A stretch of 64,000 nt of DNA. Source: Takakia lepidozioides. Its lineage: Eukaryota > Plantae > Bryophyta. This document shows, one piece after another, positions 2,761-50,852 of the stretch. The notes under the pieces are model-generated. The model was not told the origin of the DNA. It saw only the letters and a program-made list of their open reading frames with translations, and ran no database searches. The stretch lies in assembly GCA_030704615.1 (NCBI GenBank), contig CM060732.1:51026001-51090000 (forward strand), in the 5' to 3' direction. Made by a program: the position numbers and the translations under genes. Positions within the stretch are counted from its first letter, which is position 1, and each line of letters opens with the position of its first letter.

Positions 2761-3799
2761 AGAGAGAAAACGAAAAAGAGAAATGTATTATGTCAGAGTT
2801 CAAGGGTCTAAGGGAGAGATTATGACATGTACATCAGACTATGCTGGCTACTAGTACATTTGGGTATCGATGCAATTACATCTGGGAGTTTTTCCTTACC
2901 CTTTGAGTTATATTATCAACTACTATGTCTCAAGATCCAATACTGTGTGACCATATATCCGCTGCTTGCTTTCAAAGGAGCACAGAAGGGCAGGGGACAT
3001 AGGAGAACTGAAGGTCTCCAACATCCTGCAAGGCTAGTTCCTGTGGTGGGTCTTTTAAAATGAAATTAATTCTAGCTAGGAAGAAAGAGAAGAGTATGAT
3101 GTCGAATTAAAAAATGGATCTTGCTTGTTTTCAACACTCATTACTGTGATGTATTCCATTCAGGGCTTAGGCCCCTCCAACAAAAAGGTAGCGGGAGCTC
3201 CATGCTAGGTAGTAATGGGAAAATTGAAGCGTCCCGATGAAAATAAGCTGAATTTTATCCAGCATCGCCCCGGACTCTGTTTCCTGGCTAACACTATTGA
3301 CCATGAAATTTATTATAACCTATGTCCCTTGGGGACCTTTGATCAAACATGGCCATTTGCAAAATAGTGTGGAGTAAAACTGCTGTTGCTTTGATGATGT
3401 CTGTTATAGAGCATGTGTGGTACCTAGAAGGTTGACTCTTACCAAAGTAAGCATAACTCATGGTGTCACTTCACTCTCAAAGGAAGGGACAGTCCCTGGG
3501 TACTAAATGTATCAAACACCTATGTGGCTTTCAACCCACGATCACTTATAAGGCGACTTTGTTCCTTAACCTTCGGTCCATCTATTGGATGTTAACAAAG
3601 ACAGTAGATTGTGCTTGGATCATGGGCCAATCTGAATCAACAGATGGGGTTGATTTAAATTAAAAAAATTAGCAGCAGGTGTTTGGATCAAATTGTCAAA
3701 CAGATAGGAGGCTTCAATATTCCCAACCAATGCATTCATCAAATTAAATTTTATGGTGGTGGCCGCGATCACAGCCCAATTGCTACATGCAGACAGAGA

Positions 3800-4700
3800 G
3801 ATTATGACTAATTAAATTGTATTTCAAATGAACCATCACACTTGCTGTAGCTGGCATCCATCTTCCTCCATATATTATTTTGTTGAAGTGCCAACAACTG
3901 CCATAAAATATCCAGAGCGTTCACTGCATCACAGAACAGCCACAGCGGCGTGAGCAGATGCATAGATCCTCTGAATCCTCTTCCATCAAGTATGGTTGAG
4001 TCAAAGAACAACCCAGCTACTCAATACGCCCCCAAGGCTGCAGCATGTGTTGCTGAGTATTTCCCATTTCCTCTGTCTGTGCAGTCTACTTAAGAATGGG
4101 CTCGTAATTAACAGCTTCAGTCAGACCACCATGTGTCACTTCGCAGAGGGTCAGCGTCGCGATGCTGGAATTAACATCATGCATTATAGTCAGATGTCAA
4201 TTCCATCCCTTGAACATCGTACCCAAGAGGACATGGGAAGCATCCCTATTCACGCATCCTGGAGCCAGGAAAACTTTCAAAAACTAAGGAGCTTGTGACA
4301 TCACAGAAGAAACTTCGATTAGGGCCATCAATTTCAGACATGACGTACCTGAGCAGATTTGGCAGCTTGCGTTGCAGCTTCTTCCATAAGCCGAGCATCC
4401 CTTTCATCCATCGCTCGATCCCATGCATCATGCACTGGATGCTTTGGCTGCAAGTCACCGAGGAATTTAGCACCAGACACCATGAATCAACCCAAATGCA
4501 GAGAACACTTGATATCTGACTAGAATCACATCACTTTGAAACAGGAGTGTACACACACACCTTTCCATAGATGGCTTTGTGGATAACATATTGCGAAGTG
4601 CCCATGACAAACATCATAGCGGAGATGACTCCCAGGGGGAGCATTGCTTCCCAAGACATGATTCCGCCCTCTTCTCAAAACCCTTCTTCCCTTTCTATTC
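3800..4700 (+). mobile_element. Degenerate Ty1/copia RT-RNaseH remnant
   Basis: Fragmentary similarity to copia RT/RNaseH motifs in the expected order (GSL..; P...HW; LWITYC..TNIIAEMT.RG). No intact ORF. Confidence 0.3.
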
Positions 4701-5031
4701 CTGCTTTCTCTGCCAGACCCGCAACGCTCTCTGGAATCCCACCACAGCAATCAACCCTAGATTGAGATGCTCTCTTCCTCTCTGCCTTCAGCAGAAATGG
4801 ATGAATTTGAACCCTGTGGATGATGACTAGGTATCTCCCATGCATCACATACTCGGGGTTTCTTGATGTCATATGATGCGGATTAAGAGTAATTAAAGAT
4901 TAGGCTTCTGCATTGGTCACTAAACATGCATCAGTTGCTGTAAGTAGGCAGGAACGAGAGTTTGGAACATCCATTTCATTGGAAAGAGGAGCACTCTTTG
5001 TATCCTCTTGGGGACAGTTACACCCATTTGT

Positions 5032-5073
5032 ACAGTCACCCCACTTGGGTCCTTCTATAAAGCTATGCAGGTT
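5032..5073 (-). repeat. Dispersed ~40-bp repeat, copy 1
   Basis: Reverse complement reads CCTGCATAGCTTTATAGAAGGACCCAAGTGGGGTGACTGT and matches 20221-20260 and 5428-5457. Confidence 0.85.
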
Positions 5074-5405
5074 TTCCGTCTTTGTATGCATTTTGGCTCA
5101 AAATGTTGGTTGGGTTACTGTAAGTATTTGGAGATTGTTGGCAGTGGCAAAGCCACTGGTCCTCTTCTTGAAAAACTGTCGAGGATTGGTAAGTAATGTC
5201 CAGAGCCGGCTCAGGGCAGCAGACCATTGCCAACTGTTTTGTGGGTCGACGTGGTGATGATGAGCAAGCGCTTCTAGTGGCATGATGCCCACATGGATAC
5301 GCCTCGTTTGCCACATGGACAGGGTGCAATTCAACCTAGCCCAGTCAGCTGTGAAGAGTCTCGAGTTCTCAGAAGAGATTCATCACGTTGAGGACAGAAG
5401 GGAAG

Positions 5406-5473
5406 AGATCTGGTATCTGTGTATACAAACCTGCATAGCTTTATAAAAAGACCCAAGATCTGGTATCTGTGTA
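5406..5473 (+). repeat. 32-bp insertion flanked by an exact 18-bp direct repeat
   Basis: AGATCTGGTATCTGTGTA occurs at 5406-5423 and 5456-5473. The insert 5424-5455 is a piece of the dispersed repeat above. Confidence 0.85.
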
Positions 5474-5508
5474 GGTACTGGATATTGCGTGAGTTGAAGT
5501 GTGCAGTT

Positions 5509-6189
5509 ATGGAGTCAGATTCTCCTTCCCCTTCTTCACTTTCGACGATTGTTTCTTCTGATATTGCTTCTGCAGATGGGTTTTCCCCTGCCAGCTCCCC
5601 CTTTCTGAACAGGGTGTGGGCTGGATTACTACGTCTCCCCCCTCCCCCCCCTCATGTTCTATCTGCCTCTTTGTGTCCTCCTTCTGCCCACCTCTTCCTT
5701 TCTTCGGCTGCTTTATTACAATCCTGTACCCCGTCGTCTTCTTCCCTTTCTTCAACTCAATTCACCTCTCACCCATTGCCGTTTTCTTCCACTTTACTGC
5801 CCATAGTTAGGTCGCTGACTCAAGTCCAAAACGCTCCGCGGTCTGCCCCGTCGAGCCTCTCCTTCCGTTCTTTCTTTTCTTCATCTCCAGCGAACCAACC
5901 TTACAAGGAGTACAAACTACCACCTCCGGTCAACCCCCCTGATGCAGACATTCCAGATCAGGCAACATTGAGAGAGCAATGGAACAATGCAATCCGACTC
6001 TACAGCCGGTGGTATGGGCATGCCTGGGGTACTGCAATATTGGGAGGGTTCTTATTGTTTCTGGTGGGGTGGCAGGTCAAGGGCGAGAACCCATTGAAAC
6101 ATTCTAAATTTTCGAAGAAAGAGGACGAGGCATCGGAGGCATCGAAGGAGGCAAACACCGCGGGAAAGAAGGATGACCCATCGAAATAG
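5509..6189 (+). CDS. Conserved plant single-pass membrane protein of unknown function with S/P-rich N-terminal extension (possible organellar targeting)
   Basis: ATG at 5509 follows a TGCAG acceptor-like site. The C-terminal block PDQATLREQWNNAIRLYSRWYGHAWGTAILGGFLLFLVGWQVKGENPL matches a small land-plant family I recall. One hydrophobic helix. Confidence 0.75.
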   Translation: MESDSPSPSSLSTIVSSDIASADGFSPASSPFLNRVWAGLLRLPPPPPHVLSASLCPPSAHLFLSSAALLQSCTPSSSSLSSTQFTSHPLPFSSTLLPIVRSLTQVQNAPRSAPSSLSFRSFFSSSPANQPYKEYKLPPPVNPPDADIPDQATLREQWNNAIRLYSRWYGHAWGTAILGGFLLFLVGWQVKGENPLKHSKFSKKEDEASEASKEANTAGKKDDPSK

Positions 6190-7365
6190 AGCTAGCTTAA
6201 ACGATTGCTGTGCTTCAGAGGAGAGCTTGGCCGAGTGGGTACCTGCTCTTCACCAAACCACCTCTGATCAACAGATGCAAATTACGTGCAGACTTCTACC
6301 ACAGCAAACTGTATCTACATCATATCCATTATGTTAAGAGTCAGAGTTAAGTTCTTCTGACTGGTTCGCAGCATTATGTAAATTCAGCCCTGAAGGCTAT
6401 GCCAGAACCAAGCATCTTTTGTTGAGTCAAGTGCCAATCTAATGTCCAGATCTCATTGTACACTATCATCAACTGAACTATTGCACATGAAGATGACATT
6501 TCTGCAATGTCTGTTGCTATAAACGTTGAATGTCCACATGTTCAGAAGCAGGGAGCTACCCCTAGTGCAGTTTGGCGTGCACATCTATATGTGACATCAA
6601 GAATAGTGTCAACTAAGTTATCTCAAAACATTTTGTGGACTGTCCTAAACCGGTGATGTAGCCCAAAAACAAGGTGTGCAAGATTATGGCAACAGCTTTT
6701 TGCTGCACTTATAACGTTGTGCTTTGTCTTCCTGGTTAATTTCCATCAAGCACTTTGAAGTTGGTTTGCCCATTTTCAGCTGGTCTCCTGTAATTTCTAC
6801 CAGGGTCAGCTTTTCTTGGCTTAACAATGTTGTGGTCAAGTATGTGTACTCGTAAATTCTGAACCAGGTGCCACCAAAGCAAAATACTATCCACAACCAT
6901 TCAATTTGTGAACAAGCTGGACCCTGCATTTGCATGGAGTGTCGTAGTTCTTCTGGTGACACCAAATAAGATTTTTCCACGGTTTTGAACTTTGAAAGTA
7001 ATCAATGTTGAATCACTAAGCTCACTGAGCATCCAATAAAAAGTCTCATACTCAATTGATGGTAGTAACCAAAGGGGCCTCTGAAAACTACGTTAGTGTG
7101 GGTAAGAAGCCTATGTTACAAAATTACAACAGAAACAGTCTGCACAGACAAGAAACAATACCATAGTCTGCTCAAGTTTCTAGTGCACTGGCAGGTTTGG
7201 TAGCATGTGATGTTTACAATCAAGCCACATGCTGCCTTTATTGACAGGGTTTGGAATGTCCAGAATCTATTTTCTTCAGGGCTATTGACCAGATACTCCA
7301 AAAGAGAGAATAGTGCATGTGCTACACACTGGCCCCATAACATGCCTGCACATGTTGTCTGTGTT

Positions 7366-10300
7366 TCACTTCTTCAAGAGCTTCAAGACCGACTCATACA
7401 CAAGAAAAGTGATGGATGATGAAGGTACAACCCTCAAGAGGTTGGGTACGATGCCTTTATACAACCCACGCATGCCTTCATACCTGTCATCCACAGATCA
7501 CCCCCTTATACTCCAAATGATCTAAATGTTTAGACCTTGCTTCATGCTTTACATCAAACTTGAATGGTGTGATCCTCAGAGGGGGATCTAGGAGTCCTCC
7601 CTAGGCTCCTGGGGTCTCAGGTAAGGGGTAGAATTACAGAAGAGGTTGTACAGTTCCAACTACTCTGGGAAAGAAGTGACTAGATGTTGCGAGTTCACCA
7701 CACCATGCAATATGAATCCACCGGCTACTAAAGCTAGCTGTGTACACAATGCAGCGACCACACTTCAAGTCATACCTTGAAAGTCTTCTAACCAGTGCTT
7801 TGAAAAGGCTCTACAACCCGAACGGAAGCACAGATTGGAAAATAAGAGCCGAGTTCCAGGAAGCTGCAAAGGTTTACCTTAGGATGTCTCTGAAGGCCTG
7901 CCTGCTGTCCAGGTACTTCACCACTCCAGATTCATCTGGTCGTTGCTGTGCATGTTTTAGTTCACCCGTCAGAGCTTTTACATCCACCCAATACATAGAC
8001 ACAAGACCATACATCTTTAGTTTCTTAAGTGGTACTGTTCTGTTCTTGAGAAGAGACCAACATACATGGGGAAGAATGCTAGCTTTCAAACTGACAATTT
8101 TTCCTCAAGGTAACTTGGTGATGGTTGAGCACTACCTGAAGGCGAGCTCGTATGACCTGCAACAAGGAATCCACATGTACACAAGTTGAGGAATTAGATT
8201 TGAATAATGTGTACACTATTAAAGACATGACTAAATGAGATGACTGTGGGACTGCAATGATCAAGGTGATTATAAAGAATGTGCATCCTCAAGGGGTTAT
8301 TTCCAGTGCATTCAAAACGTTCTGTCGGCTGTCAACTTCTTTGCTGTCCCGTCACTGCGCTTGAGCAGGACAGGACATTGCTCTGCCCCCTACTTTATAC
8401 CAGTAATAAAGGAAGAATACAATTGGGGCACTGTTGTGTGATTGAAGATGTGCAGCTCATCAAGTCTCGCTCAAGACATAGTTCCACTCTTTCCACCTAA
8501 TCATTGTGATTGCTAAGGTCCTAGTCTCCTTTCTGGAAGAAAACCTCGGATGGTGTAGTGAGTAAATAGTATACCTGATATGGATAGGTGAGGAAGATAG
8601 CAAAAAGCTTGGATGATGCGCCTAAAAGAGCAATGTCAAGAGGTGTCTGAGACACAGTACATCACAGAATATGTGCGATTAGAAAGTCTATTACTCGCAT
8701 ACAAGTATTAGCTTGTGATTTTGGGGGTCATCCAACATGCACCTATGTGGCTTTGAATTTTGAAAGGTGGCCTTGTGTCCTAACCATGGCATCTGTTGGA
8801 TGCTGTTGTCTTTTACTCTGACCTTGACAACCTCCTTGATTTCAGTGTTTATGCTCCCCAGGTGGAGAGGCAATTGGTTAGAGAAAGAAAGAGAAAAAAC
8901 GTTTAATACGTCAATGGGGGCACATGAACTACAATCTAACCAGAATACTGCATCAAAAGACCCCAACTTTACTCTGTCTCAGAGAGAAGAGATGCCCTGC
9001 AAGGTTCAGCATTCTTCGCTTGTCAAGGTTTTCTGATGTAGGTTTTCTTTATAAAATTTGATCCCGGGTATTTCTTCCTTCCTTGCAAAGGAACATCCAG
9101 TGAATAAAACACAGAAAACAGAGAAAGAGAATTAAAAGCTGTATAAGAATATTGAAAAGGGCAAAGAGGAGCAAAACAGGTGGGGGCTTACATACCAAAA
9201 GATCTTCACCACTCTTAGACTTTTGTTGGTCAGCAGCCCTTTTCGAGTGCAAGGCAATAAGCAGTTTTCGGCCTTCTTCATATGCCATGAACTGTAGTGC
9301 TCCATGAGATACCTGCACTTCCTAGGCTTCAATCCATCGATCTACCTGTTTTGGAGCACATTCTTTCTATCTGGTAACTAGTTACTGAGCATCCATGTTC
9401 AAGTGCCAGGAGTAAGAGAGGTGGTCATCTTCAGACTGACCAGAGGAATGAAAAGAAAAGCTTATGTAATATGTACCAGACAAGGCTAAAGACACTCACA
9501 AGGATAAGGCCCGGGCCCAGTCCTTTGTAAAGACCACGCCAACCCTCCTCTCTGAGAATGCTTCGCAAAGCATCTGCATTTCAGCTTGTTCCCTTAGTTT
9601 CGAATGGACAGCAGGTCAAGAAAATAGATTTAATGTAGGATAGAATGGTACTCATAGCTCCCATGACTGTTCGCAGCACATGATAATATCCGCATCTTGA
9701 CCAGTAAGACCACCCATATAATTGTGAGATTATAAGTACTGACGCACCTGGAATCTCTGAAAATATAAATGATATTCTGAAGGTATGAGCAATGGAATAT
9801 ACCTGCAAAGCCCATGTAAGGTCGACCGCCATGGCCAGGGGCCTGAAGCTGTAACCGTGTTTTCACAACCCACACTGGATTCGTAAGCACGCACACCTGA
9901 CCCCACCCCACAACCACATATTTGAGTGCAACTTTACCCTGTTTCATACATGACTTTATTTGGCAAAACAGGTTGAAGCCAACTTACAGTAAAAGGCACA
10001 GGCCTGAAGAGCCACTTACCAAAGTGCACAGCCACACAATCAAAGCCTACATGGCTGCCACAAACAGGATGATGACTGTTGATCTAGAATCAACACACTT
10101 ACAAGCTTGGCCTTTTGGAACTGCCAGAGAAAAGACCTACAGACACGTGGGTATTCTCTATACAAACAAGATGAGTTGGTCTTCCAAACATCTTGCTTCC
10201 TGGAAGACAAACAGAAACTGCTCCTCCCTTAGGTAGGACAACACTGGGGCCACAGGTTCAAGAGCAAAGGGAAAGCAGCACACAATTGTCCCAGCCTCTG

Positions 10301-26282: not shown

Positions 26283-26298
26283 GTCCTTTAGGGGTTAA
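26283..26298 (-). mobile_element. piggyBac-type terminus (reverse orientation)
   Basis: GTCCTTTAGGGG-TTAA; its reverse complement TTAA-CCCCTAAAGGAC resembles the termini at 31042 and 32244. Confidence 0.55.
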
Positions 26299-30547: not shown

Positions 30548-30746
30548 GTTGGTACTTTGAAAAATGGATTACAAATTATTTTCAAAAATACATTTCATAT
30601 TTGTGGTAACATGTTTGGTTGTGATAAAAGAATTAACAAACTTGAACTCTTAGAATTCTTGCTAGATGATCCAATATAAGGCCCTCTACTATTTCAACTC
30701 CATGTGCCTACTTAACCCTTCACGCACACAAGTATATATACCAATA

Positions 30747-31002
30747 CCGTAGGTTATGGTCAGCTTAGGCACTCAACTGCCTAATAATTAATTAAAGTGA
30801 AAAAATGGGTTAGGAAGTGCAAAAATACTTAATCAACATGTGGGGAAAATTCAAATTTGATCATAAAATATGCAGTAAATAGCTTGAAATCCACTTTTCT
30901 TGTCCACTTTTTGTTTTTTGGGATATTATTTAAATAATTATCCAAAAAATTAGACAGTTGATTTTTTAATTATTATGTGCCTAAGCTGACCATAACCTAC
31001 GG
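30747..31002. mobile_element. Tc1/mariner (pogo-like) MITE
   Basis: Perfect 26-bp TIR CCGTAGGTTATGGTCAGCTTAGGCAC flanked by TA on both sides. AT-rich interior. Confidence 0.9.
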
Positions 31003-31041
31003 TATGCTATCTTCTTTGCACAAAATTCACACACTTTTATT

Positions 31042-32243
31042 TTAACCCCTCAAGGACGAGCCTGTTTTTGGTGGGGCCCGTCCAAAACCAGACATACCCT
31101 CACGGATGAGGGTGTATCTCCCATTTGACAAACATCCGAGGGGATGAACCGTTCCAAAGTCATCCTACCTACTTCATGCACCTGCAGTAAGAATTTCAGG
31201 AGATTTGACCATCTAAAGTGGAAGATTATAACAAAAGTTCTAGGCCTTTTTTTTTTTTTGATATATTTTCAACATGAAAATTTCGTTTGACCAAGCAGAT
31301 TGCCAACCTGATTTTTCATTGATACAGCCTACCCAGATTCAGATTATATGGCACCCACAGCAAAGCCTCCCAAAATTCCAGAGCCAAATTCCAAAAATGC
31401 ATAATGGTTGCTTTGTATGGGAAAACAGTGGGGTCAAAATGCCAATTTCTCTCATGGGAAAAACACATCCCCCCAAATGTGGGGCAATTTGTGAGGTAAT
31501 CCAAATTCCTCTGCTCATGTTGTTGTTTGCCTACCTACCGAGTTACCCTGAAAAAAATTTCCACATTCTAAGCTGTTTGTAGGCAAAGATTGCCAAAAAA
31601 CCGAATCCCTACTTGAATCCCAGCTCCGCCCAAGAATTGCCGGAGCCCGGTGGACATTTCCGGCCAAAAAATCCGGCCACGTCATCACAAACCAAGCAAG
31701 TCACGAGGCCTCCACCTTGCCTTTCAGCGTTCTCCCTCCATGACCTGCCAACGCCCAAACACTTCCCACAGCCACACCAGGAAGCATACTCAAAAACACG
31801 AGCTATGCGTTGAAGCTATGCGTTAATCCTAACTGATGACCGAGAATGCTAAGGAAATAATCCACACCGTTCTTAGGGTTAGAATTTCAATTCTGTCACA
31901 TATGATCAATCTTGGTGCAATTTTGAGCGCAGGAGTGATCGGATAGCCAGAGCATTTTACATGGAGGAAAACTCCACAGCCATCCGCAGCGCACAACCTG
32001 TAGACCCTAGATGTGAAAGACGATACTCTGTGACGCTCCTTGTCTCTGAGTAGCAAAATCCGCTTGCACCCACATGATGCAACCAAAAGTGAGCGGAAGC
32101 CTGGCACAATCGTGGCCCCAAAACCAAAGATATACTTAGGCACCTGGAGGAAGGGGAAAAAGGGTCGTACAAGGAGGAAAAGAAAAAAGAAAAGTGCAGT
32201 ACTTATGTAGCCTACAATCAGTTTTTTTGAAGTAAAAGGGCAC
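31042..32243 (+). mobile_element. piggyBac-type left end and subterminal region (element A, truncated or interrupted)
   Basis: TTAA-CCCCTCAAGGACGAG at 31042 is identical to the terminus at 32244. No matching right end seen. Confidence 0.6.
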
Positions 32244-33904
32244 TTAACCCCTCAAGGACGAGGCGACCCGTATCGGGTCGGGTCAAAATTTTGATTGGAT
32301 GATAAATGTGCAGATCATGTCGGATGAAAACGATTCCTGAACAAAAAGTGTAGCCAATAAATATTTACGGCCCCCTGTGTTGATTGCACCCTAAAAAATC
32401 TAATCCCCCGCCGTCAGGATTTTTTGGAATCTGGAGGGGTACCCAAAATCCTGTGGTTTTGGGCCCGCCAGCAGGTTGACTGGCAGACGTGGCAGGCAGG
32501 ATTGGGCGGGGGGTGGGCATTTGCCGACAACGGGTGACAACGGGGGGCTGCATGTCCGCCCGTGCGGACAGCGGCGGACTCCCGGCACGCGCAAAACGCC
32601 AGGCACGTGGCCCAATTAGGTGGCAGCTGGCGGGGGCGGGAGCTTCTCTCTCGCTCTATGCGTTTTGCATATCGTGTCCTGAGTGCTACGATTGTCTCCT
32701 TGTAATCGAGCTTTTGCTTCGTTCTTTCTTGGTTTTTGCTTCGCTTTGGCTTTGCTGCGTCAATCTTATTTTGCCTAGGATTGCTTGGTTTCATTTTTTT
32801 GGGAGCTCATGTGCCGCTGTTGAGGAGCAGGGGTGGCTGCGCGTCTATTCGGTTTGTTGGGATCGTCCTTGACTTTGCCTTTACAGCGGCTCCTTCTCTT
32901 TACACCTGCTCATTACCTTCGTGTTGGGGCGCATGCGCAGCGACGACGCTTCATAGGTATTGCGCAGCCATCTAATCACTTATGCATTTGCATTTGCTTG
33001 ATATTGTCTGCCTGCTTTGCTTGATTTGTTTGTGCATTGAATGTTTGTGGTTTGTGGGTGGCAGGAATTCTATGGCGTCCACTAGAAGCATTCGTGTCTT
33101 TTCCGAATCGATTGCATGTCCAAAACCACTGAGGGAACAACTTTGAGATGTTTGTTACTACTGCACAGTCGTAACGGATAAATTCACATTTCTAAATAGC
33201 GGCATATGAAGTCCGCACAATATTCGCGGCGATTTAATTCAATTAGGTAAGGTTTTTTTTTTTAAAACAACAATTACAAGTGGTTTTAAGCACTAGAGAA
33301 CGACTCTTAACAACTAGGCATTCATTGCACACCCTATTCAAAAATGGAATTTTTATAAGTGCTCCACATGGCTCATGACGTGGAATATTTTAATGTATTT
33401 TAGGGCTTATGTGGCTCGTAGAGATTGTTCTAATCGTCGGATGTAAAATGATCTAAGGGTGGAAGAGTAACTTTGTCCTTTGCCTGTATCTGTCTAAGTG
33501 TTGGGAGAGGGATGGAGGCTTGAGAGAGAGACGAACAAGTGATGCGAGAAGGACGAAGACCAAATCGAGGCCCATGTCCTGTTGTTGCAAGCGTTTATGG
33601 CGTCAAGGGCGCATTATGTGCAAATGTTGGGCTCTTGGCTCCCCTTTGTACCATGATTTGATATTCTTCCTGATGATCACAAGGTTCTTGGGGGAATCAG
33701 CTTGTCTTAGCAACCCATTTTAATCTCTGCCCGCTCAGCTGCACCGTGGTGTTCTTACGAACCAATCCCACATTACCTGACTAGAGATACAAGCAGCACG
33801 CACAAGAGGTCTTCTTGGGTTCATGGTCAGTCGCAATGGATCATGACACAAGATAGAGGACAATGTGGTGAGGGCACCTTCTTCTTCGAGCTATTTCAGC
33901 CTGT

Positions 33905-34725
33905 TTTGCCGAGATGTAGTGTTGTGGAGTGCGATGCTTGCAGGGTATGCACAGCAAGGACGTGGGATGGAGGCTTTGGAGACCTATGAAGTTGCGAAGG
34001 GAGAGTTTGATAACAAGGCTGAACAAGGATGTTGTCTCAAGGAACACGTTGAATCTCGCAAGATATGGCCAGCATGTGTGCGGATGAGGGCATTGGAGAC
34101 ATATGAGCAAATGTTGAGAAGAGGTGCAGCCTGACCGGGTCACGTTCATTTGTGTTTGCAATGCATGTGCAAACCTGGCAGCCCTAGAGACTTGGTAAAG
34201 GGCAAAGAGGTCCATCGTGACATTGTCAAAGCTGGAACTGTACCAGATGTAACAATACCTCGTCGACATGTATGCCAAACGTGGGAGCATTCCCTTGTGG
34301 ACAATGAGTGTTTAACAATATGGCTGAGCGAAATGTGGTGTGGTGGAACGTGATGATCGCAAGACATGCACAACATGGGCGGGGATTGCGGGTTTTGGAG
34401 ACCTATGAGCAAATGATGTGGGTCTAGGGGATGAAGCCCGAGCACATTACGTTTGTTTGTGTTTGTAGTGCATGTGCGAGCCTGTTGGAGAAGGGCAAAG
34501 AGGTCCATGGTTGCATCGTCAAAGCTGGAATTGTGGTAGATGTCATTCTGAACATGAATACCCTTCTAGATAGGGAGTGTTCAACAATATGGCTGAGCGA
34601 AATGTGGTGTCGTGGAAAGTGATGATCGCAGGACATGCACAACAGGGGCGGGGATTGCAGGTTTTGGAGACCTATGAGCAGTTGATGTGGGAGGGGGTGA
34701 AGTCCAACCACATTACGTTCAGAGA
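33905..34725 (+). pseudogene. PLS-class PPR repeat fragments (CACTA cargo)
   Basis: RDVVLWSAMLAGYAQQGRGMEALETYE, KGKEVHRDIVKAG, ITFVCVCSACASLLEKGKEVHGCIVKAG and RNVVSWKVMIAGHAQQGRG lie in shifting frames. Confidence 0.9.
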
Positions 34726-34899
34726 GTTCAAATGCCTCTCCACCATGACCTTGCTTAGCTAACCATGCCTTGCTGATGTTGTTGTCTTGCACTTGAGCTG
34801 TTTTTGGACACTGGCTGGAACATCCACAAGGCGGCTCTGCTCGAGAGAGAAATCAGCTTGAATGCAGGGGCAGATTTTGAGATCACAATCACCACTCAG

Positions 34900-37120
34900 A
34901 ACGTTGTTCTTTGCACCGGCATGGCATATCAACATGCATATCAGCCCAAACTCATTACTCCGTGAGCCTTCCACTGCCGGAGTGTGCCCATTCAAGCCAG
35001 ATCTTCGAAACGCAGGGATGGAACGGGGTTTTGAAACCAGCATTGCCTAACTGGATACCCAATTCAGCTCCGCATCTTGGTCCATTAATCTGCTGCACAT
35101 TGTGAAGTTTTATGCCCGTTCACCGCAAGTTGAAGAAGGAGTATTCTTAAAACACGGGTACTCATAATCTGAAAATGGCTCCAGCTTATGTTGTTTGAGT
35201 GCGAATATGAGTGTGGTTGGCTTGGCAGCTTTACATCTGGTCCATCCCACTCGATATGATGAGCAGGTTCAGCTTGACTTCTCTCACACAAAAGACGCTG
35301 CCAATATGGGGTTTGCTGCCCTAGATGACTTCCCGTCGTTGTTCTGGGCTGCAACATACAATTAATCTGGCCCATGGCAAGGGGCCTTGCCTTCCACCAA
35401 TCATCTGTAAGTCCTGTGAAACTGTTTTTGTGGCAATTTGTAAGCAGTGGGCAGCGATGGTGGGCTATTGTAGGATTTGATGAACTCAATGCCGTGTACT
35501 GACAGCAACCCCTTATCTCTTATGCAAGCATTCAACAAGCCAAGTTGACTGCAAAGTATATTTAGCCCCCCACGTTTCTAGTTGCCTAATGTTCTTCATC
35601 TCCTGGGCAGAGCATTTTCCAGGGTCTCCATCTGTGATGACACACTATCTTCTCATGTGGTTCAGCTTCTGGTCTTGCTCTTGTTTGCACCACCCCAATG
35701 AAGGGCAGTTCCCACCTGCTTGATTCTCTCTATATGGTTGTCTTGGGTCTTGGCAGGGTTTCCCACAACCGCCTTTTCTTTTCAGACTGCCAGTCATCAG
35801 CCTCGTTCTCCAATGCTTCACTTTCTTCCCCAGTGAAGTGCTCTCCTCTTTTATGCTTCAACGTCCCTGTAGGTGTCTTTTCCTTCATCTCCCGTGGTGC
35901 TTTCGAATGAATGAGCACTGATTTACATTTGTTGGCAACACTTACGGTGTCCCTTTCCTTGCATGCCACTGCAGGCCCGCATTGACTTTCTTGGCAGGGA
36001 AGTCTCATCCTTCTCCCTCATTTTCTGGCTCTGTTGGTGCCCCACTCACCATGCTATCATAGCTGCACTTATTTTGTGGTGTTGCGCCAGCCAAGGGCGA
36101 TCTTTCACTGGTCCAATTGTTGGCAACAGCTGATTGGAGTCTTCTTGGCAGAGTCTCCCACGAGCTCCCATCAATTTCAGGCATCAGGTTTTCTACCCTG
36201 CCCTTCCACTTTTCATAAGCGAGGTGCATGTCTTCCTCCCTTTCACTCTTCAGCCTCTCAGGCAGATTTTTCTTCATGCGATTGCTGCTCCCATACTTCC
36301 AGTCCTTGTTTAATTTTCTCCAGCCATCACCCTCAGATTTGACAAGGTATTGCTGCCCTTCCTTGTGTCTTTCCTCACTCCCAGCTGCCGGTTTTATCCC
36401 AGATTCACCTCTCATCCTTGCCTGGGGTTTTGCTTGCCAAACAACCGTTGTGTGGGGAACTTCAACGAAAGGCAACATCTCATTCTCAGCTCCTGTCTTT
36501 GTACCTCTTTGCAGCAGTCCAGCCTCGGGTGCCTCACTTTCTGATTGCTGGGTTGCATTCTTCGCCGCCAACCTTTGACAAGAAAACGTGCTCCATCTTC
36601 CTCATCTCCTACTGGTTCCCTTGATGCTTCACCTCGTATGTCTTCCTCCTCATGTTTTAGCAGCAGCTCCTATGCTTGAATTGCTACTTTTCCTCGTAGT
36701 TGATCTTGTGCTTTCCTTTTTCTCCGTAGCCTAATCAACAGTTTTGTCTTGGCAGCTCCCTTGCCATGAGTGCCTTGTCTCACTGCATCTCCCTTGGCTG
36801 CCCACCATCCGTGGAATCTTTCTTCCACTATTCTGACCCTCGTTGGCATGCACTTTGCTGCGATGCCCCACATGTATTTGTTGCTCCCTTTAATCATCAA
36901 CATAGTGCTCCAGAGCCAGTTCCTCATTGTTGACCAGTTGACCTTCTCAGCCCTTGGACCCCATTTTCCCTTCTCCCATGTTGCCTCATCTTTCTGCTTC
37001 ATCATTTGCTTTACTTGCACAATGTTGCTTCTTCCCTACAGCTCATCATATGTTGTGGCTCTTTCCCATGTTGCACTCACTCCCATCATACGTTGTGCAG
37101 TTGATAAGACTGAGATGAGT
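34900..37120 (-). mobile_element. Degenerate gag/ORF1-like retroelement fragment nested in the CACTA cargo
   Basis: K/E-rich broken ORFs (36005-36571, 35730-36008) followed by eroded zinc-knuckle-like motifs (GHKTSQC ~35095; GLNGHTP ~34985). Confidence 0.3.
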
Positions 37121-37399
37121 TGATGCAGGATAGGGGGAGGGCTTGCTGGTGTATGTTGTCCGATAGGCCCCATGCATAGAGTCAAAGCTGGAAGTCAGCC
37201 TTGCAAGGACCCAAGTGAGAGAAGTCTGGTGGGGGTAGCATCTTGGGGGATGGCAGTTAGGGCAATGTGTGTCTAGGGCAATATATGTCATAGCAGCGGG
37301 TGATGTGCTGCCAATTTTGAGGATAGAGACAGCTTGTAAGCTGTAGATTTGTATAAGTGGTTTCTTCTTACACATATTGCTCCTAGTTTGCCACACCAG

Positions 37400-37538
37400 T
37401 TGTTTGCGTTTGTAGTGCATGTGCGAGCCTGCTGGGGAAGGGCAAAGAGGTCCATGGTTGCATCGTCAAAGCTGGAATTGTGGCAGATGTCATTCTGAAC
37501 AATACCCTTGTGGACAGGGAGTGTTCAACAATATGGTT
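37400..37538 (+). pseudogene. Second copy of a PPR L-S fragment
   Basis: Highly similar to 34452-34596. Confidence 0.85.
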
Positions 37539-37564
37539 GAGGGAAGGATAGAGTGTAATGACTA

Positions 37565-38650
37565 CTAATGAAGGCACCTTCTTCAATTTCACCTTGTTTT
37601 CCCCTCTTATCAGAATCGCCCCTAATTATTCATGTCTGAATTCTGCAAGTTAGCTGGTTGAGTGAAGCTTTGATAGTTTGGAGTGACTTTGACATGATTC
37701 TGCCAATGTGACAACAGGAAAGTATCAGAAACAGGTAACACAGACGAGGAGAAGTTGTGGAATGAATATTTTTCTGACCCCAGTCAATGGTGGGACAATT
37801 GAGGCAAGAAGGTGAATGTTTGTTGGATTATAGAGAGTAGCAGATGCAATTGAGCGTAGGAACTAGTGTGATAAGTTGAGTTGGGTGCTTCCTAGAACAA
37901 GTCTAGGCTGTCATCGTCAACTGCTAGCAACAAGGCAAGGTTGTATGCATGATTCGTGTGAGGCATGGATAGTTGAAGGAGCAAGGATAGAGTGTGGGTG
38001 CAGATTCACCCAAGAGGGCTAGACTTCAAGCTCCAGATTAACTATGAAGCTATAAGAAACCTGCATGGGTAGATGGTCAACTGGCAGCAACGGCACAATT
38101 GATAAAATCAGACATTGTTAATGAAGGCATCTTCTTCAGCACATTTCACCCTGTTTTTCCCTCTTATTAGAATCGGTCCAAAATTTCCATGTTGAATTAT
38201 GCAAGTTAACTGGTTGAGTGAATCTAGTTTGGAGTGACTTTGACATGATACTGCTATGTGACAACAGGAAAGTATCAAAAAACAAGTAACAGACATGAGG
38301 AGAAGCTGTGGAATGAATATTTTTCTGCCCCCAGTCAATGATGGGACAACCGAGGCAAAAAGGTGAATGCCTGCTACATTTCAGAGAGTAGCAGACGCAA
38401 TTGAGCATAGGAACTAGTGTGATAAGCTGAGTTGGGTGTTTCCTAGAACAAATGTAGGTTGTCATTGTCAGCTACTAGCAGCAAGGCAAGGATGGATGCA
38501 TGATTTGTGCAGGGGCATGGATAGCTGAAGAAGCAGGGATAGAGTGTGGTCCAGATTCATCCTAGAGGGCCAAATTTCAAGCACAAGATTTACCTATGAT
38601 TCCCTGTGGATCAATAACTACAAGAAACCTCCATGGGTAGATGGTCTATT
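37565..38650 (+). pseudogene. Two tandem ~550-bp units, each encoding a split OSB-type PDF motif (CACTA cargo)
   Basis: EEKLWNEYFSDPSQWWDN*GKK, then a GT..AG intron, then IHPRGLDFK/IHPRGPNFKHK...SLWINNYKKPPWVDG. Contains stops and frameshifts. Units are about 37565-38117 and 38118-38650. Confidence 0.75.
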
Positions 38651-39480
38651 CCGTGGAACTCACTGAAGTCTTGCATTATGAGGATCAAAACTGCTTGACT
38701 TGCACGAGGCCTTGACCCTTAGGCAATCCGCTGCTTTTTTACTTTGTGTTTTTCATTTTGTCCCATAAGCTCTTTGAGCTTTCCGCAGATGTAATAAAGT
38801 ACCATTTTGTTTCATTTCATTCATTTTCATTTCATTTTGTTTCATGGCATGTCTTTCATCGTTTGTGCATTTCTAATGCATGATTAGTTCTCTTGTATGG
38901 CATTACTAGTCGACTCACTACAAACACCAAAACTCCAAAGCATGAATCACTATGAATGATTGTTCAAGTAATTTCGAGCACTTCATGTAAAGTAGTAAAG
39001 CAGTGGTTGCGCCAACTTCCGCAGTCACAATTGTCACTGGGCATGTAGCACTGCAAGTTATGTGGTCTACTACCACGTGGCGCCCCGGGCCCGTGGCCAT
39101 GTGGCAGCAGTGGTGCTCGTCGTGGCGCCGCCACGTCGGCATCCACATCGTCGTCCACGTCCGCGTCCATGTGTCACCGCGCTTCAGTGAGTCAGTCCAC
39201 TCATCCTGAGGGAAAAGTCAAAGTCAGCCCAAAAGGTCAGACACACGAGCGGCCCGCCTGGTTACGCCACGTGGTTCTTCAGCATTAATCGCATTAATTG
39301 CTGAGCAGTTGTTCGCGCGTTTGCGTCCTTTACCACTCCAATCATTGGATGTCCAACCCAACTACCACGTCTGTTGTAACTAGTCGTTTGTAACTTCCAG
39401 ACGATCCCAGTTTTTTGACTTTTACGACTCAAAATGAGTCGTTACCCCAGTGGCAAATGACACGAATGCTTCTAGTGGTC

Positions 39481-40258
39481 TAAACGTAAGGGATCTGAGC
39501 TGCTTGAGCCCCCACCCGAGCATGCAGCTGCGGCAGAGGTTATAAGGGTGTGGGTGCAGGAAAAGCAGCATTGCACTGTGGAGCAATGCAATGTAATTCT
39601 AGGTTGTCTTTGTCCTGAGTTTCAGACCTCTTTGCCTCCACCGCCTACTGCCAAACGCTGGCCGCGCCATCCTTCTCCTCATAACTTTCGATTTCTCAGG
39701 CGGAGGCAAGTGGCTTCTATTCTTGGTTGGAGAGAGGGGAAATACTATGCGATTAGGATGTATATGCCTAAGAAGCCATGCAAGTGGGGCATCAAGGTGT
39801 GGGCGTTGGCTAACTCGGAGACCAGCTATGTGTATGATTTTCAGGTATACTGTGGGAAAAATGCAGGGGGGCCTAATGGTGAGAGGCTGAAAAGTGGGAA
39901 GGGTGAAGGCTAGTATGATGTGGTGTGTGGGCTTGCTAGTGGACTCCATGGTTTGGGGCATGTAATTGTCACTGACAATTACTTCACTTTTGTTCAGCTT
40001 TTAATTGACTTGGCCAAGCTTGGTACATGGGCCACTGGCACAGTTTGTGTGAACAGAAAAGGCCTCCCTCCCTCCTTGCTATCCAAGAAAAAATCTAAGA
40101 CTGCCAAGCAAGGCCAGTCCTGGTACAAGATGCATGTTTTCAGGGAACTTGCGCCCGTGTTGTGCTGGGACAAAAAGGGGGTATTCATGTTGTCATCTGT
40201 AACTAGACCAACATGCAGGCCTTCTTCTCTTATTACCGTGTCATGGTTTTGTTTGTGA
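39481..40258 (+). pseudogene. piggyBac (PGBD-like, DDE_Tnp_1_7) transposase, disrupted
   Basis: MYMPKKPCKWGIKVWALANSETSYVYDFQVYCGK, VIVTDNYFT, WATGTVCVNRKGLP and WDKKGVFMLSS are hallmark piggyBac blocks. In-frame TAG at 39911. The first catalytic Asp block is missing. Confidence 0.92.
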
Positions 40259-40739
40259 TTAGTTAGAAATAGTTATTTCTAACTAATTATGACATTATAC
40301 ATTTATATTTGTATTTTGTTGGCATTTGGACTTCATTTGGTTCCATGGGCCAAGTGAGGTGGCGAATCTCACTTGGGACGTGGAGAGGTTATCTCAACGT
40401 GAGACGTAGGCATGCTCGTCTTCTTCTAGTCGAGCCTTCCGAGGCCTCTCTCGTCGCTATAGCTCTAGTACTTGAGATGGAGAGTGGGTGAGGTCTGTAT
40501 GGTGGAGTCCTTTAGCAAATGTGCCATTGGCATGACTTATATAACGTGATAGAGTGGTCTCTCATCTTTTCACCATTTCCGTATCATTGTGGCGTGGCTT
40601 TCTAGGACTATATGCTAGGAAGTGTGGTTGGACAACAATGTATGTTGTGGCACGATGCTTAGGTGCACGACAACTGTGAGACGCTTTGTGGGACAACAGA
40701 GAGTCTTGGTGCCATCAAGTCAGTGGTCAAGAGAGAGGC

Positions 40740-42159
40740 AAAGAAGATGAAACCATCAGGCTTTTAGCTTTGTTAGGACCAAGTGAAGCATGACCGCATG
40801 AAGATGATGGGTGGTTTGCAGCAGATTTTGCTTTAGTACATCGGATTTACGAAGAGACTACTGACGAACAATATTGGTTGTCTTGTGTCAACTTGCTAAA
40901 AGAGGCTGAAGAGGGGCCATATCTTTGGGGTCATCCAAAAAATGAAAGAATAGTAGTCTTTTCCAAACAAATCCTGTATTCTATACCCTATGCAACCCAC
41001 GGTCCTTAATTGCAGCTTTCAAGAACAAACTTGAGGAGATAACAAATCGTATGGAAAACAATGACAAATTGTTGCTTCTCATCTTTGCACATGGAGAGCA
41101 GGAGGGATCAACAGGGATACTAGTTGGAGAGGAAGTGAATGGTGAACTTGGAATTTTAACAGCTGAGGAGGTAAATACCTTATTGAAACCTCTATCAAGT
41201 CATCAGCCAGTAACATTGATAACATCTGCATGCTATTCGGGAGAATGGCCCATTGAGGGTTCAATTGGGACAAGAGTTGCTGCAACAGGCACTGATGATG
41301 AATCTCTATCATTCCCAGTATCTAACTTTGGAAATTGTAGGGGAGATACTCTTGGGGAGGGTTGTGGTATGAGTTGAGCAGGCTTGGGGTTCCAAGAATT
41401 GGGAAGGAGATCCCTGAGGGGGACAAAATCAGAACCTGGACAGAGAAAGTGAAGCAGCGTTTGCAAGATATGTTTATTTTCCATCCTGTACCTACAATTA
41501 GTGTGCCAAATGAAAGTATTTGGGAGAAGCATGCACGTTATGTTTTGTGCCTTGAGATGGATTCTAATTTGACATCGAGTTGTGAGGTTGTTCCATGTAA
41601 CCCTACCCCAGACTCAGTTAGAGATGTGGATGTACAATTTACAAGGGGTAGTTCAACATTGAGGGCCTTGAACAAGCCTCTTGCAGATGTTTTACCTATT
41701 ATGATGCAATATTTTTCTTCATGCAACCCAGGCTTGCCCACTGCAGCTAGTTGCATCGGGGTTTTTAGGTTGGCAAGGTTGTATGATGAGGGTTCAGCAT
41801 CAAAGGATTTGAAGAAATTGCATTTTCTGTTGAGATACATAATTTTGGAGGACTGGAGAGCTGGAAGGATTCTAAATTTTTTTAGGATCCCAAGATTGTG
41901 CTCTATCTACAACTTTAAGCAGTGGGAGCACAAGTAGAAGGAGATGTCACCATATCTTCGAGCAGTAAATGCAGTGATGCCATTCGATGACCCCCCCAAA
42001 ATGCATCCCCGTACTTACAGATATACAAAGCCTACTGTGTATGTGGGTTGGACTGCCTGGATGGCAAAGGTGGATGTAGAGTGGTTAAAAGCAAACTTGC
42101 TTATATATGTTGGTGGCCGGAAATTAGCTTCAGGTGAAGGAGGGACAAGTGGATGTTGA
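40740..42159 (+). pseudogene. Caspase/legumain-fold (clan CD-like) peptidase homologue, intronless, decayed
   Basis: LLLLIFAHG (His 41090) and VTLITSACYSG (Cys 41231) form a dyad; DGWFAADF lies upstream. Lesions: TGA 40791, frameshifts ~41000 and ~41355, TAG 41935. Confidence 0.75.
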
Positions 42160-48638: not shown

Positions 48639-50852
48639 TCACCAGTAATCCCCACAAGAACAGACCCCATCTTGGAAGTGGTGAAAGCGGCTGGCATCCC
48701 GCACAACAATTGCTCGACCAACAATCTTGGAGAAAAATTTGATGGCCGTATGGCAGTCTCCACAAACCCGAAGATTCTTGATGACACGCAGAGGCGTCCC
48801 AGAGGCCGTGCTGATGATCCCAAATGCAACAGCAAGCTTCTCACTATGGCGGCAAAGAGAGAAACCCTTTTGCTCCTCATCAACATCATGCAATGCAAAG
48901 CTCGTGTCGGCCACATATCCAGCCTCCTTAATCTGCCGAAACAATCTCTCCAGCTCAGCATGAATGTCCTCAATTTCTGGATGCAAATTGTCTTCTACAA
49001 GAAATGTATGCACTGAATTGTTGACCTCAATGGAGCTGAGCCCTGGCACCTTTCTTACACCTCTGTCCTTCATCATTTTTCTTACCTTTGCTTGATCCTC
49101 CCACCTTCCGGCTGCTGCATAAATGTTTGATAGCAGCACATAAGTTGGAGCATGATGTGGATCCCATTTAAGAAGGCTTTTTGCTGCTCGCTCTGCTACC
49201 TTCACATCACCATGAATTCTGCAGGCACCAAGCAAGGACCCCCATACTGAGCTACCTGGTTGGATTGGCATTTTCTTAATGAAATCCTCAGCCTCCTTCA
49301 AAAGCCCTGCACGGCCAAGAAGGTCCACCATGCAGCCAAAATGCTCCAGTGAGGGGGTGAGGCCATGATCTCGACTCATGGAATGAAAGTAGTGACGGCC
49401 CTCAGCCACTAGGCCCACATGCCTACATGCAGAGAGGACACATGTAAAGGTGACTCCATCTGGCTGAAAGCCTTCCTGTTGCATCTGTTTGAACAGTTGC
49501 AGGGCATCCATACCACACCCATGCTGAGCATATCCTGCGATCATTGCATTCCATGCGACCACATCTCGGTGAGCCATCTTGTCGAGCACTTTGCGTGCAT
49601 CTTTCATGCTCCCGCATTTTGCATACATATCAACAAGGGCAGTCTCCAAAATGGTATTTGAGGCAATTCCAGCTTTTATGATGTCAGCATGCACTTCCTT
49701 GCCCTTTTCTAAAGCTGCCAGGCTGGCACACGCATTGAGAACACAAGTGAAGGTGAATTCGTTTGGCATCACCCCTCCACGTGTCATTTGTTCATAGATA
49801 TCCAAAGCCTCTCTACCACACCCATGCTGAGCATATCCTGCTATCATCGTAGTCCATAAGACCACATCCCGATGAGACATGTTGTCAAACACTGGACGTG
49901 CATCTTTCATGCTCCCACATTTAGCATACATGTTAGCCAGGGCAGTCTCCAGAATGATATCTGGGGCAATTCCGGCTTTGATGATGTCCGCATGAATATC
50001 TTTGCCCTTTTCCAGGGCATCCAGGCTGGCACAGGCATTGAGGATGCAAATGTAAGTGACCTTGTTGGGCCACACCCCTTCCCGCCTCATTTGCTGATAG
50101 ATATTGAAAGCCTCCCTACCACACCCATGCTGAGCATATCCTGCAATCATCACATTCCATGAGACCACATCTCGTTGAGCCATAGAGTCAAAAACTTGAC
50201 AAGCATCCATCACACTGCCACACTTGGCATACATGTCGACAAGGGTATTCTCCAGAATGATATCTGGGAGACTTCTAGTTTTCATGATGTCGGCATGAAC
50301 CTCTTTGCCCTTTTTCAGGGCTGCCAGGCTGGCACAAGCATTCAAAACACAAGTGAATGTGACCTTGTTGGGCATCACCCGTTTTCGTTGCATTTGCTCA
50401 TAGATATCCAACCCCTTCCTACTACACCCATGCTTGGCATACCCTGCTATCATTATGTTCCATGTAACTATGTTTGCTTCAGGCATTTTGTCAAAAACGT
50501 GGCGTGCATCCACCAAGCTCCCACACTTGGCATACATGTTAACAAGGGTGTTGAGTAGGAAAATGTTTGGCTTGAATCCACTTTGGATGATGTGGGCGTG
50601 CACCTGTTTTCCCTCTGCTAGGCCTTTGATGTTGATACACTCCTGCAATAGACAGACATAAGTAGTAAAGTCTGCCGAAATGCCTTGTTGGTTTAAAATG
50701 TGCAGTGCCTCTTTCAGTTGTCCTGCCTTACATTGCGTCCTTACATCCGTACAACTGCCCAAAGAGTCCTTGTTGACTCCCTTTCTTGGTCCTCTTGCAG
50801 TGGTCGCAGAGGGAGTTCCTGATTGAAAAGATTCCTGATTTACCCCTGCCAT
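48639..50852 (-). CDS. PLS-class PPR protein with E1-E2-DYW domains (organellar C-to-U RNA editing factor)
   Basis: 14 PPR motifs, (L-S-P)x3-L-S-P2-L2-S2, then PG box (VPGLSSIEV), HSEKLA, CGDCH and terminal DYW. A CAG acceptor one base before the ATG implies an upstream exon. Confidence 0.97.
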   Translation of the reverse strand: MAGVNQESFQSGTPSATTARGPRKGVNKDSLGSCTDVRTQCKAGQLKEALHILNQQGISADFTTYVCLLQECINIKGLAEGKQVHAHIIQSGFKPNIFLLNTLVNMYAKCGSLVDARHVFDKMPEANIVTWNIMIAGYAKHGCSRKGLDIYEQMQRKRVMPNKVTFTCVLNACASLAALKKGKEVHADIMKTRSLPDIILENTLVDMYAKCGSVMDACQVFDSMAQRDVVSWNVMIAGYAQHGCGREAFNIYQQMRREGVWPNKVTYICILNACASLDALEKGKDIHADIIKAGIAPDIILETALANMYAKCGSMKDARPVFDNMSHRDVVLWTTMIAGYAQHGCGREALDIYEQMTRGGVMPNEFTFTCVLNACASLAALEKGKEVHADIIKAGIASNTILETALVDMYAKCGSMKDARKVLDKMAHRDVVAWNAMIAGYAQHGCGMDALQLFKQMQQEGFQPDGVTFTCVLSACRHVGLVAEGRHYFHSMSRDHGLTPSLEHFGCMVDLLGRAGLLKEAEDFIKKMPIQPGSSVWGSLLGACRIHGDVKVAERAAKSLLKWDPHHAPTYVLLSNIYAAAGRWEDQAKVRKMMKDRGVRKVPGLSSIEVNNSVHTFLVEDNLHPEIEDIHAELERLFRQIKEAGYVADTSFALHDVDEEQKGFSLCRHSEKLAVAFGIISTASGTPLRVIKNLRVCGDCHTAIKFFSKIVGRAIVVRDASRFHHFQDGVCSCGDYW

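Follow-up and report, generated by a model that had tools for sequence, protein, structure and literature searches.

Does the DNA between positions 32244 and 40258 of this 64,000-nucleotide window, the whole stretch of Takakia lepidozioides DNA that was analysed, hold a piggyBac transposase gene of a land plant whose reading frame returns once a nested CACTA element is taken out? The evidence favors a different answer, at a probability of roughly 85%: the locus is what is left of a two-gene piggyBac transposon, now dead, in the genome of a moss-type land plant, and was later split by the CACTA element.

The interrupting element occupies positions 33080 to 39477 of the forward strand and measures 6,398 bp. 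It has the CACTA...TAGTG termini and 3-bp target duplication that define CACTA (CMC-EnSpm) elements, its terminal inverted repeats of 24 nt are 96% complementary, and the duplicated GTC stands on either side of it at 33077 to 33079 and 39478 to 39480. The element is non-autonomous, since a domain scan of eight of its ORFs (89 to 188 aa) returned PPR fragments only and no transposase domain. PPR-like direct repeats lie inside it, and its summed depth in the DNA run is very high. In its ends, its duplication and its captured host PPR fragments it resembles the non-autonomous "Pack" elements of the CACTA (CMC-EnSpm) group; it shows nothing unusual among them, and its role here is that of interrupter alone. 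Excising 33080 to 39480 removes the element together with one GTC duplicate, and the frame that opens with eight bases, ATG GCG TC (33072 to 33079, forward strand), resumes at 39481. Translation of 39482 to 40258 gives KRKGSELLEPPPE..., in the frame shared with the piggyBac blocks. The sequence-only reading had placed the CACTA insertion in codon 3 and predicted that its deletion restores an in-frame MASKRK start. The bases read directly bear out the former, while translation and an uninterrupted relative with the same start confirm the latter.

That relative, protein P0001 of locus L001, comes from a public Takakia moss metagenome. It begins with MASKRK and shares 77% amino acid identity with the window's frame over the next 70 residues; the match joins P0001 residues 22 to 91 to the truncated remainder of ORF1, codons 3 to 88, at 39481 to 39736 of the forward strand. 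Because an independent, uninterrupted relative begins alike, the MASKRK start is not a product of chance. The homology stops exactly after ...GWRE. Past this point L001 continues with further ORF1 sequence and then with a separate transposase ORF (profile 2 to 51) in a different frame. In the relatives, ORF1 stays conserved coding sequence beyond the window's junction and ends in its own stop. In L002/L003, L005 and L008/L009, too, an ORF1 homologue precedes the transposase. At least four diverged piggyBac families have ORF1 placed between left end and transposase, and their ORF1 sequences are 33 to 39% identical to P0001, the representative of the window's family. The dN/dS of ORF1 is 0.19 between the window and L001 and 0.12 in the core. 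These comparisons indicate that MASKRK opens a separate conserved accessory gene, ORF1, and not the transposase. No Pfam domain and no Atlas match were found for ORF1; its AlphaFold model is all-helical at low confidence (mean pLDDT 59.7), and Foldseek placed nothing in the PDB beside that model at E ≤ 0.001.

The transposase is represented by an internal fragment at 39737 to 40227 of the forward strand, covering about positions 144 to 273 of the 349-position profile and fused in frame to ORF1, as seen from Pfam and from alignment with full-length relatives. The piggyBac blocks noted earlier are real: with the window pieces searched separately, Pfam DDE_Tnp_1_7 (PF13843), the domain that marks the piggyBac superfamily, gives two matches above its curated cut-off of 22.4 bits, one of 31.9 bits (E 1.2e-7, profile 144 to 189) and one of 43.5 bits (E 3.3e-11, profile 193 to 273), and about 37% of the domain is present. 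The same alignment shows that one of the three aspartates of the catalytic DDD triad is kept, the second, in TDNYF. The first catalytic DE motif is replaced by ORF1 residues, and the GVD motif with the third aspartate is missing, as is the Cys-rich domain, which relatives P0013 and P0073 carry at their C terminus and which is absent here because homology to piggyBac ends near 40227. Loss of the triad shows that the window copy is inactive, not that its ancestry is different. Searched against PDB sequences, the transposase piece matched nothing at E ≤ 0.01, tblastn detected no further piggyBac or ORF1 sequence in the window, and word searches for relatives returned one and two only.

An in-frame TAG stop interrupts the fragment at 39911 to 39913 (forward strand), and these three bases are missing from related copies in two runs. 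One such copy, on a contig of 1151 nt, matches 39735 to 40227 only and lacks the TAG. The open frame across the fusion is 143 codons long. The junction of ORF1 and transposase at 39736/39737 has microhomology of at most 2 nt and looks single-copy, with a depth without the variant of about 75 against 63.5 for unique sequence. The claim that removing the CACTA element restores a transposase ORF is not supported: MASKRK belongs to accessory ORF1, the in-frame join stems from an internal deletion, and the copy is dead.

The upstream TTAA-CCCC terminus of the sequence-only reading is present at 32244. The TTAA target site, read directly at 32244 to 32247, adjoins a left terminal repeat, CCCCTCAAGGACGAG, at 32248 to 32262, both on the forward strand. 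This repeat is similar to CCCTTAAACGTC / CCCTTGAACGAC, the ends flanked by TTAA in a complete relative within L002 and in L005. The complete L002 element has TTAA on both sides; the window copy has it at the left end only, and its right end is missing. No right end paired with 32248 was found in the window at 3 mismatches in 20, at 2 in 12 or at 6 in 15 with TTAA, and a right-end-like motif lies at 26283 to 26298. The 19-mer TTAACCCCTCAAGGACGAG occurs twice in the window, at 32244 and 31042, against 0.00 expected by chance. The second occurrence marks another TTAA with a left-end motif (31042 to 31061, forward strand), in direct orientation 1.2 kb upstream, and what follows it bears no relation to the sequence from 32263 onward, as for the solo end of another element.

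Positions 32263 to 33071 of the forward strand, which separate the left end from the first codon of ORF1, probably form the 5' subterminal and untranslated region of the element, judging from orientation and distance. The left end lies 824 nt from ORF1 in the window, compared with about 417 nt in L002 and about 450 nt in L005, and 32244 to 33071 shows no similarity to the 5' region of L001 above that of shuffled sequence. The link of the 32244 end to ORF1 consists of orientation, distance and motif similarity, and the 824-nt spacer aligns to nothing. An unrelated high-copy repeat (40228 to 40757, no strand assigned) closes the 3' side of the relic, its summed depth being 6e4 to 1.4e5 against 63.5 for unique sequence, which begins at about 40758.

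The window also contains a PPR-E-DYW gene, which is intact, and an O-FucT gene, and related piggyBac copies are present in the same DNA run. The piggyBac lineage resides in the plant: it has multiple copies, a plant CACTA element is nested in it, the intact PPR-DYW gene flanks it, and the unique flanks recur in an independent sample. On the plant-gene neighbors, the nested plant-type CACTA element and the related copies, the proposal of a genuine piggyBac lineage in a land-plant genome stands, and the description of such elements as rarely reported in land plants is fair. In 2017 plants were believed to lack piggyBacs, and it took a 2025 survey to report them in land plants; the "group 4" piggyBacs comprise those of fungi, land plants and algae (PMC13461360).

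Other readings of the locus share parts of this evidence. That MASKRK is the N terminus of the transposase itself, so that removing the CACTA element restores the transposase gene, agrees with a frame that runs unbroken from the ATG through to the piggyBac blocks, and a GT..AG pair in L001 (644 to 770) could in principle link ORF1 to the transposase frame. ORF1 as a first exon was rejected, however, because the stretch that would be the intron is coding sequence conserved among distant relatives, where its EGD..GFS..VN motif region keeps 33 to 39% identity. The stop of ORF1, the acidic N-terminal region that the L001 transposase possesses in a frame of its own and the gap of about 1 kb between the two genes in L002/L003 all speak for separate genes, and the rejoined window ORF lacks profile positions 1 to 143 and 274 to 349 and contains the TAG, which makes this reading very unlikely. 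A piggyBac fragment captured or rearranged away from its own left end, with the TTAA-CCCC at 32244 belonging to a different non-autonomous element, is unlikely to a lesser degree. The solo end at 31042 and the right-end-like motif at 26283 to 26298 indicate that stray ends are common here, and the spacer at 32263 to 33071 has no detectable homology to relatives; but left end, ORF1 and transposase lie on one strand, in the order of three relatives and at comparable distances, and no other element boundary is visible within the spacer.

The 143-codon frame would also suit a domesticated, PGBD-like host gene or a functional fusion of ORF1 and transposase, and a related copy may be transcribed, as a contig from a run guessed to be RNA suggests. 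That contig is another copy, since it differs from the window by 28 letters over 39735 to 40227 and continues differently beyond both ends. Domesticated PGBD-type genes are single-copy intact ORFs without transposon ends, whereas the window copy is interrupted in codon 3 by 6.4 kb of CACTA sequence, bears an in-frame stop, is truncated at its 3' side, is multi-copy and keeps a left end, so that domestication is extremely improbable. The occurrence of group 4 piggyBacs in fungi (PMC13461360) and the presence of fungi in the Takakia metagenome behind L001 (PMC9021317) could be taken as signs of a contaminant or an assembly chimera. Against this, a PPR-bearing CACTA element of very high copy number interrupts the relic with a clean 3-bp duplication whose removal restores a homologous ORF start, plant genes flank the relic, and a single contig of 7.6 kb carries its unique flank from 41011 onward at the depth of single-copy sequence in the DNA run, with short flank pieces recovered in an independent run at 0 to 1 differences. 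The probability of foreign DNA or misassembly is close to nil.

The two-gene relic accommodates these observations in the following way. The ancestral element would have consisted of TTAA, left end, ORF1 with its MASKRK start, transposase, right end and TTAA. An internal deletion at 39736/39737 has fused ORF1 codon 88 with mid-transposase sequence, in frame by chance, and removed the first catalytic aspartate; its likely origin is abortive gap repair after excision, as commonly happens to cut-and-paste elements. The copy lacks all sequence 3' of about 40227, namely the third catalytic aspartate, the Cys-rich domain and a right end, and the high-copy repeat abuts there; the TAG at 39911 is further damage to this copy. 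The non-autonomous CACTA element inserted into ORF1 codon 3 later than the piggyBac, generating the GTC duplication. No single public contig bridging the relic junctions was found among the matches listed, which speaks against this account. The depth profile of the relic fits the other evidence for a damaged copy. The window copy cannot encode a transposase, and with only one end left it cannot be mobilized either.

With the piggyBac superfamily (PF13843) the relic shares the TTAA target, an end starting with CCC and a transposase core with KP.KWGIK and DNYF, although it retains about 37% of the domain, one catalytic aspartate and one end; "group 4" (PMC13461360) is its candidate assignment. 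The classical Trichoplusia ni element has a single ORF and no ORF1, whereas the window's family has the extra upstream gene. Ds, derived from Ac, is an internally deleted, non-autonomous derivative of a cut-and-paste transposon. The window copy resembles such derivatives in having lost an internal segment whose two breakpoints share microhomology of at most 2 nt, but it has also lost its 3' end and so could not be mobilized in trans.

The window copy is an ordinary one, although it belongs to a genuine lineage of plant piggyBacs about which little has been written. The copy has value as annotation only, recording that piggyBac was present in this moss lineage before the CACTA burst, and the locus is a clean example of nested insertion. 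Beyond this copy, it seems somewhat probable that land plants (bryophytes) harbor a piggyBac clade that always travels with a second gene, to which the relic is one witness. ORF1 in this proposal comprises about 100 conserved residues, predicted by a weak model to be helical and without a known domain. Purifying selection has maintained it in at least four of the families, and it is therefore probably needed for their transposition or regulation. No description of an ORF1-like helper for piggyBac was found in the literature searched. ORF1 is a conserved extra gene in this piggyBac family, and with piggyBac among the major tools for gene transfer, a naturally occurring helper protein would merit testing on intact copies.

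The sequence-only reading had proposed that removing a CACTA element from the window restores a piggyBac transposase ORF. This element (33080–39477, 6,398 bp) is defined by its arms, which show 96% complementarity across 24 nt, and by a GTC target duplication on each side (33077–79 and 39478–80); a 3-bp duplication is typical of the CACTA superfamily. At the 5' junction (33072–33098), ATG GCG TC is followed by CACTAGAAGCATTCGTGTC, and at the 3' junction (39459–39490), GACACGAATGCTTCTAGTG is followed by GTC and then TAAACGTAAG. No transposase domain was found in the CACTA ORFs, which hold PPR fragments alone, and in the DNA run the summed depth over the 3' part of the element is enormous. The element is therefore non-autonomous, high-copy and Pack-type.

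The frame of ATG GCG TC picks up again at 39481, where translation of 39482–40258 gives KRKGSELLEPPPE, so that the in-frame join to the piggyBac blocks holds. A Pfam search applied to the two pieces separately confirmed the domain assignment, both matching DDE_Tnp_1_7 (PF13843) above the curated cut-off at profile positions 144–189 and 193–273 of 349. The upstream TTAA-CCCC terminus was likewise recovered as the 19-mer TTAACCCCTCAAGGACGAG at 32244, repeated at 31042 (0.00 expected). The identity of the restored ORF was revised. Its MASKRK start belongs not to the transposase but to ORF1, a small accessory gene between the piggyBac left end and the transposase, which has its own stop in a related contig, L001.

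When the first piece was queried in a word search, a sole protein was returned, P0001 (148 aa), encoded on this 1,389-nt contig from run SRR15431198, a metagenome obtained from Takakia lepidozioides plants that had been washed (PMC9021317). P0001 is uninterrupted, also starts with MASKRK and shares 77% identity with the window across 70 residues, proving that CACTA struck codon 3 of a real ORF, as had been claimed. The match stops exactly at LGWRE, while the L001 ORF runs 57 residues further; a second ORF in another frame encodes an acidic N-terminus together with the first part of the piggyBac domain (profile 2–51). After GWRE (39736/39737) the window sequence jumps to GKYYAIRMYMPKKPCKWGIKVW, near profile position 144, and a related copy on a 1,151-nt contig from run X6 matches the window only across 39735–40227. 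The layout of L001 and the extent of this match thus indicate an internal deletion in the window copy, which at 39736/39737 fuses ORF1 codon 88 to mid-transposase, in frame by chance. A variant contig with two extra bases at 39729 has a depth of 143.5 out of a total of 218.5. The data suggest that other copies are undeleted there and that the junction is single-copy.

Alignment with full-length relatives defines the state of the relic. ORF1 residues occupy the place of the first catalytic Asp (DE motif), the second (TDNYF) is retained, and the third (GVD..D) is missing together with the Cys-rich domain because homology stops at about 40227. An in-frame TAG lies at 39911–13, three bases missing from related copies in two runs. 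Neither a right end nor additional piggyBac pieces were found in the window; the relic therefore consists of 32248–33079 and 39481–40227, about 1.6 kb, and is an ordinary dead copy. The contig from run X6, guessed to be RNA, lacks the TAG and, across the 493 bases of 39735–40227, shows 28 differing letters and 4 gaps; it may reflect transcription of a related copy with less damage.

The cut-off transposase is abutted at about 40228–40757 by an unrelated high-copy repeat, marked by a summed depth of 6e4–1.4e5 in the DNA run, roughly 1000–2000x unique. This repeat opens with a short palindrome, TTAGTTAGAAATAGTTATTTCTAACTAA, and depth returns to the unique value, 63.5, from about 40758. The left end TTAA + CCCCTCAAGGACGAG is repeated identically at 31042–31061, 1.2 kb upstream and in direct orientation, and the sequence behind this copy is unrelated to that behind the first. 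This solo end belongs to another piggyBac-type element, probably non-autonomous, for which no right end was found. A third piggyBac-type terminus, the right-end-like motif GTCCTTTAGGGG followed by TTAA, is present at 26283–26298, its partner absent from the window. At 30744–31008, inverted repeats of about 27 nt (ACCGTAGGTTATGGTCAGCTTAGGCAC and its reverse complement) enclose about 260 bp in what looks like a small MITE.

ORF1 recurs as a separate conserved gene. When the second piece was used in a large profile search, 457 matches were obtained, mostly fragments, the best at 45–49% identity, and the two-gene layout was examined on contigs from some of these. Complete or partial two-gene piggyBacs were found on JGI and Logan metagenome contigs; the relatives as a whole stem from Logan, JGI and ENA assemblies. 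L002 carries a complete element at 2751–8289 (TTAA, CCCTTAAACGTCAC ... GTCGTTCAAGGG, TTAA), with an ORF1 homologue between left end and transposase that is 34% identical to P0001 (E 3e-18). The same order of left end, ORF1 and transposase occurs in L003, in L008/L009 (L008 502–852) and in L005, where the left end TTAACCCTTAAACGG (1047) is followed by ORF1. Reading the stretch past the window's junction as an intron was ruled out, since ORF1 homology (motif EGD..GFS..VN) extends there in relatives. For ORF1, comparing the window with L001 gives a dN/dS of 0.19; between L003 and L005 it is 0.12 for the core and 0.64 for the basic tail. By these ratios, the core is under purifying selection and the basic C-terminal tail (ending KRGRR) is relaxed. 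ORF1 had no match in Pfam or the Atlas, and its weak, helical predicted structure (pLDDT 59.7) gave none in a fold search.

Contamination is very unlikely to be the source of the relic. The window holds an O-FucT gene and an intact, intron-less PPR-E-DYW gene of the RNA-editing type (48639–50852, minus strand; 737 aa, ending CGDYW), which the PPR fragments within CACTA resemble. The nested CACTA, bordered by a clean duplication and leaving a homologous ORF start when taken out, speaks strongly against a chimeric assembly. Owing to diverged copies, depth over the transposase block in the DNA run is about 10–19x unique. An independent run ('plant metagenome') contains short pieces of the unique flanks at 0–1 differences. 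In a JGI sample with ORF1-bearing relatives, one contig places a gene for PDV_N, a land-plant marker, beside ORF1. The plant genes, nested CACTA, diverged multi-copy depth and independently recovered flanks uphold the earlier proposal of a genuine plant piggyBac lineage. Taken with the Takakia origin of L001, these observations make Takakia or a near relative the probable host.

That proposal had left its origin as ancient or horizontally acquired. Several deeply diverged families with the same two-gene layout occur in plant-bearing samples (dS about 1 or more), and P0001, from the window's family, shares 33–39% ORF1 identity with the others. Judged from sequence divergence, such families of one layout would fit elements that have long resided and diversified in the lineage, and an old transfer is likewise compatible with them. 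Among the papers searched, none connects Takakia with piggyBac transposons. The occurrence of piggyBac in land plants is already published; the lineage described here is real and little described.
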